DNA of 64,000 nt from the NCBI GenBank assembly GCA_965240325.2, contig OZ251245.1, positions 992,001 to 1,056,000 on the forward strand. The letters are read 5' to 3'. The notes below the pieces were generated by a model. That model was not told the DNA's origin. It saw only the letters and a program-made list of their open reading frames with translations, and ran no database searches. Positions within the stretch are counted from its first letter, which is position 1. Each line of letters opens with the position of its first letter. Of the stretch, positions 51,565-59,599 are shown piece after piece. This DNA is from Rebecca billardiae RCC1528. Lineage: Eukaryota > Protista > Haptophyta. A program made the translations under genes and the position numbers.

Positions 51565-54229
51565 TCAGACCCAAAGCTTGCTCCCCTTGAACTTGCGCCG
51601 CACCTTGAGCCGGGTCGACTTGGTGCACGGCTCGCGCCCGGCCGACGGCCGCTGCTCGTCGAGTGCCAGCGTGTACAGACTGTCCAGCTGCGGCAGCGCG
51701 TCCGCAATGGCCGCCACGCCGGCGTCGCCGATCCGGTTGCCGTGGAGCCACAGCGTGCGCAACGACGGCATCGCGGGCACCTTGAGCACGCGCGCGAGCG
51801 CGAGCGCGCCGCGGTCTCCGATCCGGTTGCCGCGCAGGTTGAGCACGGTCAGCTGCGCGCCGCTCGGCGCCGACAGGGCGTCGGCGAGCGCGATCGCGCC
51901 CGCGTCGCCGATGCCGTTGAGCTCGAGACTGAGCACGAGGAGCGCGGCCATCGGCTGGGCCTTGAGCGCGCCCGCGAGCGCGATCGCGCCGTCGTCGCCG
52001 ACGCCGTTCTCCCGGAGCGTCAGGAAGTTCACGCCGGCCATCGCCTCCGAGCTGAGCGCGCCGGCGAGCGCGGCCGCGCCGCGCGCGCCCAGCCGGTTCT
52101 CCCCGAGGATGAGACGCTCGATGGAGGGCGTGGTCCGGAGCTGCTCGGCGAGCGCCTCCGCGCCGTGTACGCCGAGCGCGCAGCTCGAGAGCTCGAGCTG
52201 CTGCACGCGCCGCGCGCCCGCCGCGCCGAGCAGCGCGCGCACCGCCTGCGCGGACAGCTCGCACCGGCTGAGCACGAGCAGCTGCAGCTGCGTGCGCTCC
52301 AGTCTGAGATACGCCGAGATTGCATACGCCTCCTCGTCGCCGCCGCCCACGTCGCTGTGGTGGGCGGGGGCGGCGCGGGGGCGGCGAGGCGTCAGCGCGC
52401 GTGTCACTCACCCTCGGCTGCCAGCGCGGCGCCGCTCGCCTCCGCGCACGCCGTCGCGCGGACGCCCAGCGCACGGCAGCGGCGCGCGCCGCGTGCGCAG
52501 CGCACCGCAGATAGACCACATCAGTGCCCAGCACGTCCTGCAGCCGGATGCGGGCGCTGGCCTCCGCGCTGCGCGTGAGCTCGGAGAGCGGCCTCTCGGC
52601 GTACGCGCCGCCCAGCGCGCCGCCGAGCAGCGCCACGGCCCGCACCAGCCCGAGCTTGAGAGCCGCCAGCAGCAGCGCCAGGCTGAGCGACGCAGCGCGC
52701 GCCTCGAGCAGCGCGCGGATGGACTGCGCGGACGGCGGCGCGAGGAGGAGGGATGGCTGCTGCACGAGGCGCGCGAGCGCGCCGAAGCCCGGCTGCCACG
52801 GCGACGCGAGCTTGAGCAGCCGCAGGTCGTGCCAGACGAGGCGGTACTGCGCCACCACCTGCGCCAGCAGCGTGGGCAGGAAGTGCTGCGCGCTGCTGCC
52901 CTCCGCGCTGAGTGCCGCCCACGCGCCCAACACGCCAGCGGCCGCGATGCCCTGCAGCGCGAGCGAGGCGAAGAAGAAGACGGTGACGGCGTAGATGGGC
53001 TCGCGCCACTGCTCGAGCACGCGACGTCGCTCGGCCTGCACCTTCATCGGCTCGATCCAGCGGAGCGCGTCGCGCGCGGACGCGGCGACCGCCTGCGCGC
53101 TCGTGCGCGCGCCGCGCCGCGCGTGCGCCTTGCCGCCGTCTGCGTGCTGCGCCGGCGCATCGTCTCGGCCCGCGCGCGCCCCGGCGAGCGCGTGCAGCCG
53201 CTGCACGAGCGGCACGACGAGGTACCGCGCGAAGCCCAGGCTGAGCAGCGCGAGCGGCGCGAACGCGAGCAGCGCGACGAGCGCGCCGCCCGTCGGCACC
53301 GTCCACAGCAGCGCCAGAGCCACCGCCAGCGCCGACAGCCAGGCCTGCACGGCGGCCACGCCGCCAATCAGCGCGCGCTCGGCGAAGCGGAGGGCGCGCT
53401 GGGCGAGCGGCGGCAGGGAGGCGTGCCGGTACGCGCGCAGGCCCCCGCGCAGCGCGAGCGGGTGCATCAGCGCCACGGCGAGCGCGGCGAGCACCGCCGG
53501 CTGCAGCCCAACGGTCGTGAGCGTCACAACATCCAGCAGCCTCGGCCCGGCCGGCCGCGCGGCGAGCCAGGGCGTCGCGCAGCAGAGGTAGTGCTGGTGC
53601 GGGGCCAGCAGCGCGCGCAAGGTGGTCGCGAGCGTGCCGAGCGCCAGCACCCACTGCACGACCGTCAGCGAGACCCACGCCACGTACCCCGCCACGCCGA
53701 GCGCGCCGCTCGGCACTGGCACCGAGCCCCAGTGCGCGGCCACTAGGAAGAGCACCGTGGCGGGTGCGACCGTGAGCTGCGCGAGGGGCTGCGCCTGGTC
53801 GGCGACGAGCTCGAGGAAGGCGTTCGCCTCGTCGATCGCGCACGCTGCGCCGCCCACGGGCTCGATCGCGCGCATGCACTCCACGTCGAAGAAGGCGTGT
53901 GCGAGTGGATGCGGCTCGGCGCACGCGCGCGAATCGTCGGCACGCGGCGCGCACGCGGCCGGGCTGACGGCGCCGGCGTGCGACAGGGTGCGGGCGAGCG
54001 CGACCGCGGTGAGCACGAGCGCGACCACCAGCGCCACGAGCGCGGCCGGCGTGACGATCAGCCTGTACCACGGCCGGTCGCGCGCCGCGGCTGTGGACGG
54101 CTCCTCGCCTGGCTTGGCCACGTGCTCCCCATCCGCGTCGCTCGGCGGCGCGCCCTCCTCGAGGAGGACGCCGTCGTCAAGAACCACGTCCGCGTCACGC
54201 GGCGCCGAGCAGCTCGCGAGCGCGCCCAT
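51565..54229 (-). CDS. Multi-pass membrane protein with C-terminal RI-type leucine-rich repeats
   Basis: Several hydrophobic segments. Intron 52505-52355 joins them to LxLxxNxIGDxGAxALAxAL repeats. The N-terminus MGALASC is a possible acylation motif. Confidence 0.7.
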
Positions 54230-54473
54230 CGTCGTCTACCAACGCGCTGTGGATCGATCAGCGACAGCAGCGGCGCGACACAGGAGCCCCTCCCCGCTGA
54301 TGCCCATGTTTCGGGCGCCTGATTACGACGCGCCGGGCTGCAAAAAGTTGCAGCCCCTGCAGTGCAGTGCAAACTGTCTTGACCGCTCCGGGAGTTCGTC
54401 GCTCCACGGGAGTTCCGGACTTCTTGTTCAGCACGGCTCTGCAAGCCTGCGCGGTCCCGATTCGCGTGGAGCC

Positions 54474-55625
54474 ATGGCGGACCCCGAGGCCGCGCGTGAG
54501 CTCGTGCAGTACCTCTCCGTCGACAGTGACGCGCACGTGTGCCTCGCGCTCGAGCACGTGGCGGCGCTCACGGGCACGGATGAGGGCGCACAATGCCTCA
54601 TCGACACGGGCGCCATTCCGCGCGTGCGCGCGCTGTGCGTCGAGCACAGCAGCGCCGAGGCGCGCGGGCACGCGGCCGCTGCGCTCGCCAACGTGTGCGC
54701 GGCCAGCGCCGAGACGTGCGAGGAGCTGGCGGGCGCGAACGAGCTGATCGCCGCGTTGTGCACCCAGCTCGTACGCGCCAAGGATCTCGCCGAGCGCGTC
54801 GCCACCTCCGCCCTGCTCGCCAACCTCACCACACGAGACGCGGCCGCGAGCACGGCTGCCGAGCATGCAGACGCTCTCGTCGATGCGCTGCTCGGCGGCG
54901 CGGAGGACGAGTCGAGCGCGCACGTCGCGCTGGTCCTCGTGAACGTGTCGCAGCTCGCCCACTTCGCCACCTTCGTCCTGCGCGACGACGCGCACCGCCT
55001 CGTGCGCCTGCTCGACGCGGAGCTCGCGCACGCGCGCGACGCGCGGCGCGAGGGCGTGGCGGGCGTGGTCAAGAATCTGTGCATCAACAAGTACAACCAC
55101 GCCGTGCTCCTGCGCGCAGAGGCGGTGCTCCCGCGGCTGGCCGCGCGGCTGCTCCCGCCAGGCGCCGCGGTGGACGCCGAGGACCTCGCGCGCATGTCGC
55201 CCGCCACGCGCGCCGCGCTCGAGGCCGCGCTGGCCGCGGGCAGCGGCGGAAGCGAGGGCGGCCGAGGCGGCACCTGTGCTGCCGCGTACGAGCCGGTGGC
55301 AGGCGTCCGGCTGGCGCTCACCGAGGCGCTGCTCGCGCTCACCGTCACGCGCGCGGGGCGCGAGGCGCTGCGCGCGGCGCACGTATACCCCGCGCTGCGC
55401 GAGAGCCACAAGGCCGAGCCGGACGAGGCGGTGCAGGCGGCCAACGAGGAGCTGGTCTCAATGATCATGGCAGACGAGGCACCGCCAGCGCGCGCCGCCG
55501 GGGCGGACGCGCTGCCTGAGCCGAGCCCAGCGGCGGATGCGGACGCGGGAGAGACGGGCGCGGCGGCGGGCGGCGGCGCGCTCGCAACGCACGCCGAGCA
55601 CGCCGCAGAGGAGGAGGTGGACTGA
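54474..55625 (+). CDS. HGH1: HGH1/FAM203 homolog (ARM-repeat eEF2 chaperone)
   Basis: ATG at 54474; RREGVAGVVKN and EP..VRLALTEALLALTVTRAGREALRAAHVYPALRESHKAEPDEAV are characteristic of the family. Confidence 0.85.
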   Translation: MADPEAARELVQYLSVDSDAHVCLALEHVAALTGTDEGAQCLIDTGAIPRVRALCVEHSSAEARGHAAAALANVCAASAETCEELAGANELIAALCTQLVRAKDLAERVATSALLANLTTRDAAASTAAEHADALVDALLGGAEDESSAHVALVLVNVSQLAHFATFVLRDDAHRLVRLLDAELAHARDARREGVAGVVKNLCINKYNHAVLLRAEAVLPRLAARLLPPGAAVDAEDLARMSPATRAALEAALAAGSGGSEGGRGGTCAAAYEPVAGVRLALTEALLALTVTRAGREALRAAHVYPALRESHKAEPDEAVQAANEELVSMIMADEAPPARAAGADALPEPSPAADADAGETGAAAGGGALATHAEHAAEEEVD

Positions 55626-56156
55626 GCGCAATGCTCCGCCCGCGCAGTCGCCGTCGGCGGGCGCGCAGCGCGCAGCTCTGAGCTCAACGTCAGCGCGACA
55701 CTCTGAGACGAACAGCAGCAGTGTCATGACGAGGCTGCTGATGTCGCGTCGTCACATGTGCTGACGATATGGCGGTCGTCATCATTGCATGCGCGTCGTC
55801 ATCATATGGCGGGCAGATGTAGTTGTCATCTGCTGTTGATAATAATATATATAATAAATAATTTAATAAATAAAAGCGTCGTCCCGCATCATTGTCGTCG
55901 TCGCATCAGCAGTCGTGGACCCGGTCTGATGATGATGCGCGCTATACAATCATCATCATCAGCATTGTGTCTCATACATCATCGCGATCGGCGGATTATT
56001 CGGCGGGCGCATATCATGCGGCATGGCAGCCGCGCGCGGCCGCCGGGTGCAAGCCGTGCAGTTTCGCGTCAAGGCTGCCGCTGGGCTTGGCGCTTGCCCC
56101 ACTCAGCAGACTGCGGAGAGTAGGGGGCCTGATGAATGCTGCAGACGACGGTGAGA

Positions 56157-58898
56157 TCACACGGCAGCGGACCACGAGAAGCCGGCCAGCGCCTGGCGCA
56201 ACGCGGCGTGCGTCGCCCGGTTGAACTCGTCGGCGCCCGCCTCCGCATCGCCGAAGAGGTCCTCGAGCATCTCAAAGATGATCCGCCTGTCCTCCTCCAC
56301 GGAGGACACGGAGGCGCGCACGTCGAACTTGGTGAGCGCAGAGTCGAAGCTGGAGCGGTCGTTCGCAAGCGCCGCCGCGACCGCGCGGAGCTCAGCCGTG
56401 GGCAGCGCAATGCCGATGGGCAGCTCCTCCAAGGCAGCCATGAGCACCTCGACTGCGGTGGCGGGCGGCAGGGGAGTGCGCGTGTGTCGCCGGACCGTCA
56501 GGGCGCGCACTCGCGTTCGCGTGTTCGCACCACGCGCCTCGGTGGCCGCGCGCACGGGCGCGTGCGGCGTACAGAGACACCACGCGCGCGTGAGGCAGAC
56601 GGGCGCCGTCCACGGCTGCAGCACGAGCACCACTCGGCCGGTCGCGCGCACGATGTCGCCGATGTACCGGACCTCCTGACGGGACGTGCCTTGCCGCATG
56701 CACAGCACATCGATCCCTGCGCCGTGAGCGCGCGGCGCGCGGCACACACGGGGCGCGCTGTCAGTGAGCAGTCTTGAGACCGGGGCAGGACGGACCCGCC
56801 ACGCAAGCCCGGTGCAAACGCCACGCAGGAGGAGCAGCAGGCCGGGTGGCGCGAGGCCGCTCAGCGCCACGCGCGAGCGGCACGGCGGTGCGCGAGATGC
56901 AATCTCGACCCCGCGCCGGCGCGCACAGAGGTAGGTGTCGGTGGGCTTCAGGTCGTGGATGCGTGCGTACAGCTCGACGGCGGAAAGCATCTGGTCGAAA
57001 TTGCAGGCCTGCGCGTGGCTGACGAACAGGTTGGCGCGCGCCACCACCGGGCAGCCGTCCGCCGTGTGCCGATCCCTCACCATCTCCGCCACTGAGCACG
57101 GGCCTGCCGGCCGGCTGAACCCGTGCATGCGCCGAGCGGCCGGCGACGCGCTGAGCCGCTTGGCAAGAAGCGCGACCTGGTAGGAGGCGAGGTGTGGCGA
57201 GACGTGGAGCCCGGCCTGCAGCTTGCGCAGGTAGCCCAGCTGCACGCCCAGGAGCAGGTGCGGCTGCTCTTCCTCAAGCTCGGGCGCCTCGGGCTGCTGG
57301 ACGGCCACGGCACCAGCGTTGCTCAACGCCGGCACAATCCTACGCGATCGAGTTGAGAAGAGCGAATGTTTCGGCGGCGTGCCCTGGGTCGAGGCCGAGA
57401 CCTCCGTGTGCTCGATGGAGGTCACGCTGTAGGCCGAGAGCCGAGCCTCACCCGCCTTGGTCGCGTTCGCGTCGCAGCGGCAAACCTGGCGCACCGCGCG
57501 CCATGCGAACGAGCACAGGCGAGCGGCGGCCGCGAGCAGAGCGCGCGCGCAGCGCTCGAGCGGCCCCGGGACCAGCTTCACGCCGAGGGGCGCAAACGTG
57601 GAGGCGTGCACGGCGGAGCTCACGTTGAGCGCGCTTACGAAGACGATACTCACGACGAGGAAGAACCATGGTCGCACCGACGCGGCGGGTGTGCACGCGC
57701 CCGCGAGCAGCGCGACCGCAGACGCTGCGTTGGCGCACGCCATCGAGCGCGTCAGGCTGCGCGCGACGCCAGGCGGCAGAGACGGCAGCACCGTGCGCGC
57801 GCGCCAGTGCGTGTGCAGCGAGAGCACGAGGACGAGGAGCGGCAGCAGCACAATGGCGGTGCAGACCTGCACGACCGCGAGACTATCCGGCGCTGGGAAG
57901 AAGACGACCGCGCCCAGGCCCATGTCGAGCACAGCGATAGCTGCGATGAACGCAAGCAGCCGGCGGCGTGCGCGCGGGCTGTGCGCGAGCGTGGGGGACG
58001 CGAACCGCACGCCGTCGACTTCGGCGGAGGGCCAGGCTGCCTGCGCCCAGTAGAGCAGGAAGAGCGTGGCCGCGACGACGCCGATCGAGATGTGCGCGAA
58101 GTTGACAAGCAGCCACACCGGGTACGGCAGCCTAGTCGGGTGCGCGAGCCGAATCACCAGCCGCACCAGCTGAGCGCACAGCTCGAGCAGCAGCACAGCC
58201 TGCGCGATGCCCGGCGACAGCCGTCCGTCCGCGCGCCAGAACGCGCGCAGCCGGTTGGCGATGAGCTCGATGAGCACGAGCGACTGCAAGACGAGCAGCA
58301 CCTCGCGCCCGACCCACGCGGGCGAGAGGTGCACCGTCGCCCACACCGTCTCCGAGCGCGTGAAGCGAGCGTGCACCTCCTGCCCGGCGAGGAGGGCGTC
58401 GACGAGCGGCCTCGCGTCGCGGTGCGTGACGTCGGCGGCGGGCGGGCGGGGCAGACTGCGCGAGTCGCCGGGCCAATAGTGGTGATACCGCCACCCCGGC
58501 AACGGCTCGAAGCGCATATCCGCCGCGACGCTGTAGATGAGCCAGCCGACCGCGCCCGCAGCGCCCGCGCCGCGCGCGTTCGACTCGTACGAGCAGTCGG
58601 AGTACGACGGTCTGTACCGCACGACGATAGCGCCGTCGAGCGACTGCGGGCCGACATACACGGGCGGGCACACCCCGTTGTTCCACTCGTCCGAGCGCGT
58701 GAGCACCACCCGCGCGCGCACGTCGAACGCGGCGGGCGTGAACGCGAACGGCGCGGCGAGCAGCTCGGCGCCGAGAAGGTGCGGCGGACCAGCCTCGATG
58801 ACGAGGCGAGCGCAGACGGGGCACACCACGAAGAGGAGCAGGAGGGTGGCGAAGCGGCCGGTGACGCCGCGCGGCGAGCAGCCGCGTCTTTGGCGCAT
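56157..58898 (-). CDS. Signal peptide + PA domain + 7TM + C-terminal HET/TIR-like domain
   Basis: ATG at 58898; PA-like LDGAIVV..CSYESNARGAGAAGAVGWLIY; seven hydrophobic helices. Removing introns 56926-56717 and 56572-56453 gives FVSHAQ..YLWIDVLCMRQ..VVLVLQPWTAPVCLTRAWCLFEV. Confidence 0.75.
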   Translation of the reverse strand: MRQRRGCSPRGVTGRFATLLLLFVVCPVCARLVIEAGPPHLLGAELLAAPFAFTPAAFDVRARVVLTRSDEWNNGVCPPVYVGPQSLDGAIVVRYRPSYSDCSYESNARGAGAAGAVGWLIYSVAADMRFEPLPGWRYHHYWPGDSRSLPRPPAADVTHRDARPLVDALLAGQEVHARFTRSETVWATVHLSPAWVGREVLLVLQSLVLIELIANRLRAFWRADGRLSPGIAQAVLLLELCAQLVRLVIRLAHPTRLPYPVWLLVNFAHISIGVVAATLFLLYWAQAAWPSAEVDGVRFASPTLAHSPRARRRLLAFIAAIAVLDMGLGAVVFFPAPDSLAVVQVCTAIVLLPLLVLVLSLHTHWRARTVLPSLPPGVARSLTRSMACANAASAVALLAGACTPAASVRPWFFLVVSIVFVSALNVSSAVHASTFAPLGVKLVPGPLERCARALLAAAARLCSFAWRAVRQVCRCDANATKAGEARLSAYSVTSIEHTEVSASTQGTPPKHSLFSTRSRRIVPALSNAGAVAVQQPEAPELEEEQPHLLLGVQLGYLRKLQAGLHVSPHLASYQVALLAKRLSASPAARRMHGFSRPAGPCSVAEMVRDRHTADGCPVVARANLFVSHAQACNFDQMLSAVELYARIHDLKPTDTYLCARRRGVEIASRAPPCRSRVALSGLAPPGLLLLLRGVCTGLAWRVRPAPVSRLLTDSAPRVCRAPRAHGAGIDVLCMRQGTSRQEVRYIGDIVRATGRVVLVLQPWTAPVCLTRAWCLCTPHAPVRAATEARGANTRTRVRALTVRRHTRTPLPPATAVEVLMAALEELPIGIALPTAELRAVAAALANDRSSFDSALTKFDVRASVSSVEEDRRIIFEMLEDLFGDAEAGADEFNRATHAALRQALAGFSWSAAV

Positions 58899-59599
58899 CG
58901 CCCCCCGGGAGATGCACCCCGCAGCCGTGCAAGCGTGAGGGCTTTGATGAGAGTCTGAGCCGAAGGGGCAGTGTGATTTGATATGACCCAAGTGGATAAC
59001 ATTTTTGATGATGAACCGTCAACGCATAAATCGCGAAGCTTCCTTATTATAGTGAGGCGAGCGCTTCTCATCACAAACGTTTCGGAAAAGTTCCCCCCAA
59101 GCATTCATCATGACGTGAAAACAATCTGTCGTATCATCATTCATCAATCTCATCTGTTCGCAGCCTGTTCGGGTTCAGCAGGGTGAACAATTGCTATTGA
59201 CAATGATTTGACACTGCGCCTAAAAGGGGGGGATCCAAATTGTCCACCGACGACGGCGCGATGGCTGCTGCACAGTCATTGTCAAGCGTGCCTTGCTGTG
59301 TACATGCAGGTACGGGCGTCCCAACAGCGAGGGCGGGGTGGCGTAGATGGTCTCGTGGGAGGTCCGTCCGTGTGCCGGAGACGCTTCGACACCTTGGTGG
59401 CGTGTCCACACCCCTCCTTGTCGCCGCTTGCCCAGTGCTGCGCCGCGCGGCGCGGCCCGGCAGCGCGGCCCGACGCCGCGCCGCGGACACGGGACAGTGT
59501 CGAGTGCAGACGTACCCTCCTCCTGCTCGGACGCGGGACTTGAGTCTTGAGGACTCAGGGGAGTGCCTCGGCCCCGGATAAAGGCCGGATCAGCAGCGC

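Follow-up and report, generated by a model that had tools for sequence, protein, structure and literature searches.

A predicted three-exon gene on the minus strand

We analyzed a window of 64,000 nucleotides (nt) from the haptophyte Rebecca billardiae RCC1528 (positions 992,001 to 1,056,000, forward strand, of contig OZ251245.1 in assembly GCA_965240325.2); coordinates given without a contig or locus name are positions in this window. On its minus strand, a frame opens with an ATG at 58898, closes with a stop codon at 56157 to 56159, and reads through 913 codons with no internal stop. Comparison with paralogues in the same genome indicates that this frame is a gene of three exons with two real introns, each a multiple of three nucleotides long (3n), and that its spliced product has 803 residues by exon arithmetic. 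As read from sequence and predicted structure, that product is a single type-I-like seven-transmembrane (7TM) protein, consisting of a signal peptide, a PA-like ectodomain, a core with the fold of a G-protein-coupled receptor (GPCR), a cytosolic helix with a linker, and a TIR-like domain of about 250 residues that carries HET motifs. The exons and introns are as follows.

56927 to 58898, minus strand: exon 1, with 657 whole codons and the first base (T) of a split Trp codon; in-frame part 56928 to 58898; from the open reading frame (ORF) and junction mapping
56717 to 56926, minus strand: intron 1, 210 nt, GT..AG (GTGCGC...GCGCAG), phase 1, stop-free, 3n
56573 to 56716, minus strand: exon 2, 144 nt, with the GG of the Trp codon, I-D-V-L-C-M-R-Q ... 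L-T-R-A-W-C-L, and the final T of a split Phe codon
56453 to 56572, minus strand: intron 2, 120 nt, GT..AG (GTACGC...CCGCAG), phase 1, stop-free, 3n
56157 to 56452, minus strand: exon 3, with the TC of the Phe codon, the invariant Glu codon (56448 to 56450), the C-terminal, helical portion of the domain, and the stop codon (56157 to 56159)

Joined across the first junction (T|GG), the product reads Y-L-W-I-D-V-L-C-M-R-Q, and across the second (T|TC) it reads L-T-R-A-W-C-L-F-E-V; upstream, FVSHAQ is encoded at 57009 to 57026 within exon 1. A preliminary description, made from the letters of the sequence alone, had proposed the two stop-free 3n introns, both junction peptides, and FVSHAQ, all of which are borne out by junction mapping and by the paralogues.

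The gene region has a GC content of 68 to 74% and is flanked by lower-GC stretches at about 55600 to 56100 and 58900 to 59300 (GC 0.48 to 0.59); a GC profile across the gene block shows no low-GC intergenic break inside the gene. With GC this high and long stop-free frames on both strands, an open frame alone means little. On both strands of 55500 to 59500, at a GC content of 68 to 79%, stop-free frames of 300 to 900 codons overlap real genes on several frames, and they are common enough that ORF length is no evidence of coding. The gene also illustrates how ORF-based annotation of a very GC-rich genome can miss key motifs when the introns are stop-free and 3n. Our searches used exon pieces, the read-through ORF, or intronless paralogues as queries.

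Paralogues mark both introns

We performed a six-frame search of the organism's own assembly (72 Mb, 41 contigs) with the C-terminal 379 read-through residues as the query. The search gave 107 matches, in many of which query residues 10 to 123, 195 to 242, and 290 to 376 directly adjoin one another. Fifteen paralogue loci were then taken for tblastn with the three exon pieces. At seven of them (L013, L014, L019, L021, L022, L023, and L027), the pieces lie in one frame, exactly 3 bases apart at both junctions, and three more (L015, L017, and L018) have the same one-codon gap at the first junction. In a family alignment (A1), the 70 and 40 residues encoded by the window's introns are pure insertions, missing in the intronless copies. 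In nine intronless paralogues, a single codon joins the pieces in one frame at each junction; it encodes an invariant W at junction 1 and Y, F, or W, directly followed by an invariant E, at junction 2.

Among paralogues in which both junctions were mapped, the four closest to the window gene (L002, L003, L006, and L008; 51 to 84% identity in exon 1) have GT..AG introns at both of the window's sites. Their lengths for the first and second intron are 240/129, 240/119, 398/136, and 151/124 nt, respectively, and five of the eight are not 3n. Between L006 and the window, intron identity falls to 41 to 63%, while exon 2 is still 94% identical. We take both introns to be real because the intronless paralogues have a single codon in place of each junction and the sister copies keep introns at the same sites.

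Logan contigs from runs ERR14847148 and ERR14847151 were also compared. One is 100% identical to the genomic paralogue L015 over 2694 nt, and another, which encodes paralogue P0003, runs straight through that paralogue's GT..AG-bounded insertions. Contigs that are identical to a genomic paralogue or read through the insertions give no evidence on splicing. In the P0003 contig (L041:493-4446), the stop-free 3n insertions are bounded by GTGCGC and CAG and lie in the same two places as the window's introns. Placed by family consensus, their junctions are a few bases off those of the window, in phase 0 before the Trp codon and in phase 2 inside a Cys codon, which suggests intron sliding or independent gain. 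All of the family introns seen begin with GTGCGC or GTACGC.

A predicted PA-like ectodomain on a seven-helix core

The domains encoded by exon 1 are, from the N terminus onward:

58809 to 58898, minus strand: start codon and signal peptide region, amino acids (aa) 1 to 30; hydrophobic core aa 16 to 34, with a hydropathy peak of 2.5
58344 to 58808, minus strand: PA-like ectodomain, aa 31 to 185 (model fold aa 31 to 180), beta/alpha, with conserved Cys residues C77 and C102
57597 to 58322, minus strand: seven-helix membrane core, aa 193 to 434, with a GPCR fold by model
57261 to 57563, minus strand: cytosolic helix 8 (aa 446 to 493) and a low-confidence linker (aa 494 to 546), with predicted local distance difference test scores (pLDDT) under 50 from aa 497
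56927 to 57260, minus strand: N-terminal portion of the HET-like TIR-fold domain, beginning with H-L-L-L-G-V at aa 547 and including FVSHAQ and the split-Trp T at 56927

An AlphaFold model of residues 1 to 545, built with an alignment of homologues, had a pLDDT of 81.4 and a predicted template modeling score (pTM) of 0.76. In this model, a low-confidence helix (residues 15 to 21) precedes the folded ectodomain, consistent with a leader, and the homologues align from about aa 16 to 30 on. The membrane helices span residues 193 to 224, 231 to 251, 259 to 288, 308 to 333, 338 to 373, 376 to 401, and 410 to 434, followed by the eighth helix at 446 to 493 and a disordered linker. The cleaved leader and seven helices predict a cytosolic C terminus, in agreement with the Arg residues, which cluster in helix 8 and at those ends of the helices that are predicted to lie on the cytosolic side. 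The signal peptide, PA-like ectodomain, seven transmembrane helices, and cytoplasmic tail of the preliminary description are all found where it had placed them, as judged by AlphaFold, Foldseek, and VIA-align.

Likeness of the ectodomain to PA domains comes from both sequence and fold. It matches Pfam PA (PF02225) at 17.9 to 19.9 bits (E values of 3.5e-3 to 8e-4), under the cut-off of 23.9 bits, and the homologues P0001, P0004, and P0005 score similarly. Foldseek matches it to the aminopeptidase 2ek8 (E value of 9.5e-4), to the ectodomains of ZNRF3/RNF43 (template modeling [TM] scores of 0.61 to 0.64 by target), and to VSR1. C-P-P and C-S are the motifs conserved in it among homologues.

Against solved GPCRs, the helix bundle scores a VIA-align Z of 19.4 (MRGPRD) to 16.6, with 224 to 253 residues aligned, which exceeds the Z of about 13 up to which the tool advises caution with helical proteins; the Foldseek E values are 6e-4 to 3e-3. 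The class A motifs D-R-Y (after helix 3) and N-P-x-x-Y (helix 7) are absent from the window's helix sequences, and a Pfam scan of the window protein gave no match to a 7tm family. A GPCR fold with neither these motifs nor a 7tm match does not imply coupling to G proteins.

Residues 16 to 490 of exon 1 are 29 to 34% identical to the N-terminal halves of database proteins with the same C-terminal domain and 30 to 83% identical to paralogues in the organism's own genome; with P0001, exon 1 aligns over aa 30 to 657. As a lead only, the ectodomain-7TM half (57264 to 58898, minus strand) resembles unnamed clusters of a protein atlas, mostly from Endomyxa and Zoopagomycota, at feature scores of 0.95 to 0.96; in one of these clusters, PA is present in 10% of members.

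HET-type motifs and a TIR-like predicted fold in the C-terminal domain

The tail of the window protein carries F-V-S-H-A-Q, W-I-D-V-L-C-M-R-Q, and R-A-W-C-L-F-E, so that all three HET blocks are present, as defined in the preliminary description and by Dyrka et al. (PMC4986451) (S-Y-x-W; W-I-D-x-x-C-I-x-Q; R-x-W-x-x-Q-E). Near-invariant positions of the family are F-x-S-H, W-x-D, P-W, and R-x-W-C-L-x-E, every one of which the window copy retains; the family consensus for the first block is F-V-S-H-A-W. The W and E of R-x-W-C-L-x-E are invariant in 82 of 82 aligned domain sequences, and the putative catalytic Glu that had been read as intact is indeed present in the window. The sole recurrent Pfam match among these 82 sequences is HET. 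Scanning the window's exons and read-through frame against Pfam gave the weak PA match only, a six-frame scan of the whole genome with PF06985 gave nothing over the cut-off, and sequence-profile searches of the PDB with two alignments (A2 and A4) returned chance-level matches only, none of them a TIR.

Tail structure was modeled on the domain of an intronless paralogue (L013:3583-4341), with a pLDDT of 95.6 and a pTM of 0.92. The model consists of a helical sub-domain (residues 1 to 60) followed by a core of alternating strands and helices. With an exhaustive structural aligner, TIR domains rank first: SARM1 scored a Z of 7.1 (118 residues aligned, root mean square deviation [rmsd] of 4.0), followed by SpbK (6.4), RPP1 and RPS4/RRS1 (6.3 each), and IL-18R-beta and MyD88 (6.2 each). 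Eight of the top nine matches are TIR domains, and nucleoside 2-deoxyribosyltransferases and ThsB follow at Z values of 5 to 5.7. The part of the model aligned to TIRs at these moderate scores (Z of 7.1 to 6.2) is residues 63 to 252. In this model, the invariant Glu lies in the helix at 145 to 156, which follows the third core strand (129 to 132).

Foldseek of the tail model against the PDB gave no match at an E value of 0.001 or less (best, 0.047), though TIRs dominate the list. In the ESM Atlas, the same fold recurs at TM scores of 0.82 to 0.86 in oomycete, haptophyte, and taxon-less clusters, often with TPRs, and at 0.73 in a chlorophyte cluster. A fungal cluster with PF06985 in 98% of its members scored 0.51, with 191 residues aligned at an rmsd of 5.2. 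A homodimer prediction of the tail scored 0.00, which gives no verdict either way on self-association.

On motif and model evidence, then, the tail is a HET-like TIR-fold domain outside the current Pfam bounds of both HET and TIR. Of the HET/TIR-like assignment in the preliminary description, the HET motifs and the TIR-like fold stand (moderately, at Z values of 5 to 7), and membership in the two Pfam families does not; filing the tail under either was rejected, as the thresholds are not reached.

Separate from the HET-like family, large ORFs of the genome (L028 to L037) encode no fewer than 10 bona fide TIR_2 (PF13676) domains. Examples lie at C13:293189-293515, C5:1949398-1950210, C13:1545244-1546164, and C34:1015527-1015853, and two are tandem TIR pairs in one frame. 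In a weak hhalign register between the domain family and these TIR_2 domains (8% probability), F-V-S-H-A-W falls opposite F-I-S-Y-A-W, W-x-D opposite W-L-D, and the Glu of C-L-x-E opposite the invariant TIR_2 Glu. The same TIR_2 Glu lines up with the motif S-W-C-L-D-E-L in 7xoz, an ADP-ribosyl cyclase of the plant TIR type.

One of about 50 paralogues of the same design

A profile of the N-terminal part gave 76 matches at about 60 genome loci. By comparison of the coordinates of N-terminal and tail matches, about 47 of these loci have the tail domain downstream on the same strand within a few kilobases. A single rare fusion is rejected by these loci, and the gene is one of about 50 paralogues of the same design. 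Short stand-alone genes for the HET-like domain, lacking the 7TM module, also occur (L018:2873-4051, minus strand, 393 aa; L019:3138-4133, plus strand, 332 aa), and their products may serve the receptors as soluble partners or decoys.

Beyond this genome, a word-based protein search with the whole ORF found nothing, and relatives were reached through an intronless paralogue and an exhaustive profile search. The domain profile matched 8877 cluster representatives at an E value of 0.001 or less, 980 of them at 1e-30 or less. The ectodomain-7TM module lies upstream in about 20 of the 68 top homologues, and in 17 of the 68 the domain is N-terminal to TPR_10/TPR_12 arrays, which agrees to that extent with the earlier remark that such domains usually sit N-terminally in NLR/TPR proteins. 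The preliminary description had suggested a search of algal proteomes for this architecture, and it does occur in gene models of Diacronema lutheri; two of these, KFE25_009421 and KFE25_009422, are named heterokaryon incompatibility domain proteins by one source. No relative of the family was found among IMG/VR viral contigs by a method of limited sensitivity.

Ratios of nonsynonymous to synonymous substitution rates (dN/dS) between the window gene and its closest paralogues were lowest in exon 2, which encodes the motif core (0.05 to 0.36). They were 0.35 to 0.72 in exon 3, 0.45 to 0.57 in the ectodomain, and 0.63 to 1.17 in the 7TM core, with the ectodomain, 7TM core, and linker together spanning 0.45 to 1.2; counts are small, and dS is low in the youngest pairs. 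The pattern is indicative of purifying selection that is strongest on the motif core and of a receptor part that evolves fast over a constrained effector core. The seven-helix core (57597 to 58322) reaches 1.17 against L002 and 0.95 against L003, above the ectodomain, and values of about 1 here could reflect diversifying selection, relaxed constraint, or gene conversion.

Comparison with known receptor and effector systems

With the fungal HET domain (PF06985), the window family shares the three blocks S-[HY]-x-W, W-[IL]-D-x-x-C-[IL]-x-Q, and R-x-W-x-x-x-E. It differs in that every member is under the Pfam cut-off, the domain begins with an additional helical sub-domain of about 60 residues, and its position is C-terminal to a 7TM receptor, whereas HET domains lie N-terminal to NACHT, WD40, or TPR or stand alone. 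HET homologues outside fungi, including in haptophytes, and the relationship between HET and TIR were described by Dyrka et al. in 2014 (PMC4986451).

TIRs with NAD+-cleaving (NADase) activity (SARM1, RPP1, RPS4, RPPT, SpbK, AbTir, and ThsB) are the best solved matches of the tail, at Z values of 7.1 to 5.6 with 107 to 134 residues aligned. Their strand-helix order is common to both, and W-C-L-x-E stands at the start of the third helix, as in plant TIRs. In contrast to these TIRs, the window domain is missed by sequence models and has a longer loop before the Glu helix (D-P-W-D-x-P-V), and the bona fide TIR_2 genes of this genome are separate from it. TeTIR (TEP1 extended TIR), found in animal STAND proteins, is likewise TIR-like but enlarged and divergent; it has a conserved catalytic Glu, is missed by standard TIR models, and is associated with TPR/WD40 proteins. 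TeTIR is a Glu-dependent NADase (bioRxiv 10.64898/2026.09.21.753143). Compared by description only, its R-W-G loop and NACHT context are not seen in the window family.

Wiring of a receptor to a TIR across the membrane is known from TLR/IL-1R and from membrane TIRs of Gephyrocapsa huxleyi (PMC12489294). In that alga, virus elicits a response from TIR proteins that have extracellular parts or multiple membrane helices, and the description of antiviral immunity in marine microalgae is still at its beginning (PMC12489294). GPCR-bigrams, in turn, join an N-terminal GPCR-fold 7TM domain and a predicted cytosolic, possibly catalytic C-terminal domain in one chain (PMC6033456). Their partners are PIPK, AC, PDE, INPP, and TKL; TIR and HET are not listed, and the word TIR is absent from that paper (PMC6033456). 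The window family also differs from them in its PA-like ectodomain. That ectodomain shares its fold with PA-domain membrane proteins such as ZNRF3/RNF43, vacuolar sorting receptors, and PA-TM-RING ligases (TM scores of 0.5 to 0.64 by target), but those proteins cross the membrane once and carry a tail of the RING or another type, whereas the PA-like domain of the window protein caps a seven-helix bundle. In the papers searched, we found no description of a PA-7TM-TIR/HET design. Receptor-TIR wiring and the fusion of a GPCR to a catalytic domain are both known kinds of design.

Possible roles of the tail

As a whole, the locus is best explained, we tentatively propose, as encoding a receptor whose TIR-like tail would cleave NAD+ or a related nucleotide. 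Ligand binding at the ectodomain or in the helix bundle would shift the conformation or clustering of the receptor and thereby bring the cytosolic TIR-like domains into an active arrangement. In the reading that we favor, the tail would then cleave that substrate through the invariant Glu of W-C-L-x-E. Either depletion of NAD+ or a signal product could be the outcome, and the protein would act as a one-component surface receptor for immunity or non-self. Among possible roles of the tail, we rank Glu-dependent cleavage of NAD+ or another nucleotide first because of the invariant Glu and the NADase precedent of TeTIR, ahead of an adaptor role and then of a non-immune enzyme of the GPCR-bigram type. 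The immune, cell-death, and NADase roles are ones that we infer.

Several points weigh against a NAD+-cleaving tail. Pfam HET (PF06985, cut-off 22.5 bits) has no match in the window, whether searched exon by exon or as the read-through frame, and its 7 matches among the 82 domain sequences are all sub-threshold (E values of 0.003 to 0.3). Thresholds of Pfam TIR (PF01582/PF13676) are not reached either; TIR_2 matches 1 of the 82 sequences, at an E value of 0.0082, and the hhalign comparison of the family with the genome's own TIR_2 domains has, at its 8% probability, an E value of 0.004. The Z scores of 5 to 7 against the TIR fold are in the tool's "middling" range, with nucleoside 2-deoxyribosyltransferases nearly as high, and the proposed equivalence of the Glu to SARM1 E642 is drawn from the motif and the order of secondary structure. 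Values of dN/dS near 1 in the youngest pairs could reflect relaxed constraint. Many animal TIRs are adaptors rather than enzymes. For fungal HET domains, the mechanism of cell killing was unknown as of 2024 (PMC10890737).

A somewhat unlikely alternative is that the same protein uses its tail as a non-enzymatic adaptor, making homotypic contacts in the manner of TLR/IL-1R with soluble, TPR-linked domain proteins. Such a role would suit the placing of the domain ahead of TPR arrays in top homologues, the homologues P0007 and P0008, in which the domain is followed by weak TPR_12 matches, and the stand-alone short copies in the genome (L018 and L019). The TIRs of MyD88, IL-18R-beta, MAL, TRAM, and TRIF also score as high as enzymatic ones, and adaptor action was proposed for HET domains by Dyrka et al. 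in 2014 (PMC4986451). What tells against an adaptor is the invariance of the Glu and its W-C-L context across the aligned domains, a degree of conservation that fits a catalytic residue better. The family might instead be a sensory or housekeeping one (nutrients, mating, adhesion, or chemical sensing) whose tail processes or binds nucleotides or nucleosides and has nothing to do with immunity or cell death, making it a signaling enzyme of the GPCR-bigram type; we consider this quite unlikely. Folds of the nucleoside 2-deoxyribosyltransferase and MilB/YtoQ types score Z values of 4.5 to 5.7, near those of TIRs, oomycetes and other protists have GPCRs that carry a catalytic domain at the C terminus (PMC6033456), and the neighborhood, where the next gene encodes a DUF383/DUF384 protein, has no pointers to defense. 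However, TIRs dominate the top structural matches, the motifs are of HET type, and some 50 fast-evolving copies resemble repertoires of recognition receptors more than metabolic sensors.

Very improbable is an artefact of annotation, in which the introns are retained (giving a 913-residue protein with a disrupted domain), this copy is a pseudogene in decay, or the 7TM and tail parts come from different transcripts. Both introns are stop-free and 3n, so read-through is possible, and parts of the gene have dN/dS values of about 1 against the closest paralogues. Yet a stop-free 3n intron is not rare at such GC content, the intron-coded residues are missing in all intronless relatives, and the introns that sister copies have at these sites are mostly not 3n. 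By the secondary structure of the model, the insertions would fall immediately ahead of the W-I-D block and of the invariant Glu, respectively. No near-invariant family residue is lost in the window copy, the same collinear order is repeated at about 47 loci and in the Diacronema gene models, and no low-GC break interrupts the gene.

More generally, algae of the haptophyte type might each carry about 50 one-component receptors in which a GPCR-fold sensor directly switches on a TIR/HET-type domain that cleaves NAD+ or makes a nucleotide signal, with no G protein or NLR involved; at this breadth, we regard the claim as doubtful. If true, it would amount to a new route from extracellular recognition (of virus, bacteria, or non-self cells) to TIR-type immunity or cell death and would offer a tractable, enzyme-level entry into the action of HET domains. 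In bacteria, plants, animals, and fungi, TIR and HET domains act as drivers of immunity and of regulated cell death, and a large, fast-evolving family linking the GPCR fold to TIR/HET would bring a new receptor logic to these effectors, along with candidate surface sensors for interactions of algae with viruses or bacteria. The family would also supply a soluble domain of about 250 residues with an invariant Glu, directly assayable for NADase activity.

Surroundings of the gene

Other long ORFs nearby have no Pfam match. The convergent neighbor at 53622 to 55625 (plus strand) encodes a DUF383/DUF384 protein (E values of 3e-17 and 3.5e-14), with no evident link to the receptor. The intergenic islands on either side of the receptor gene (55800 to 56000 and 58980 to 59200) have a lower GC content and many repeats of the TCATCA type.

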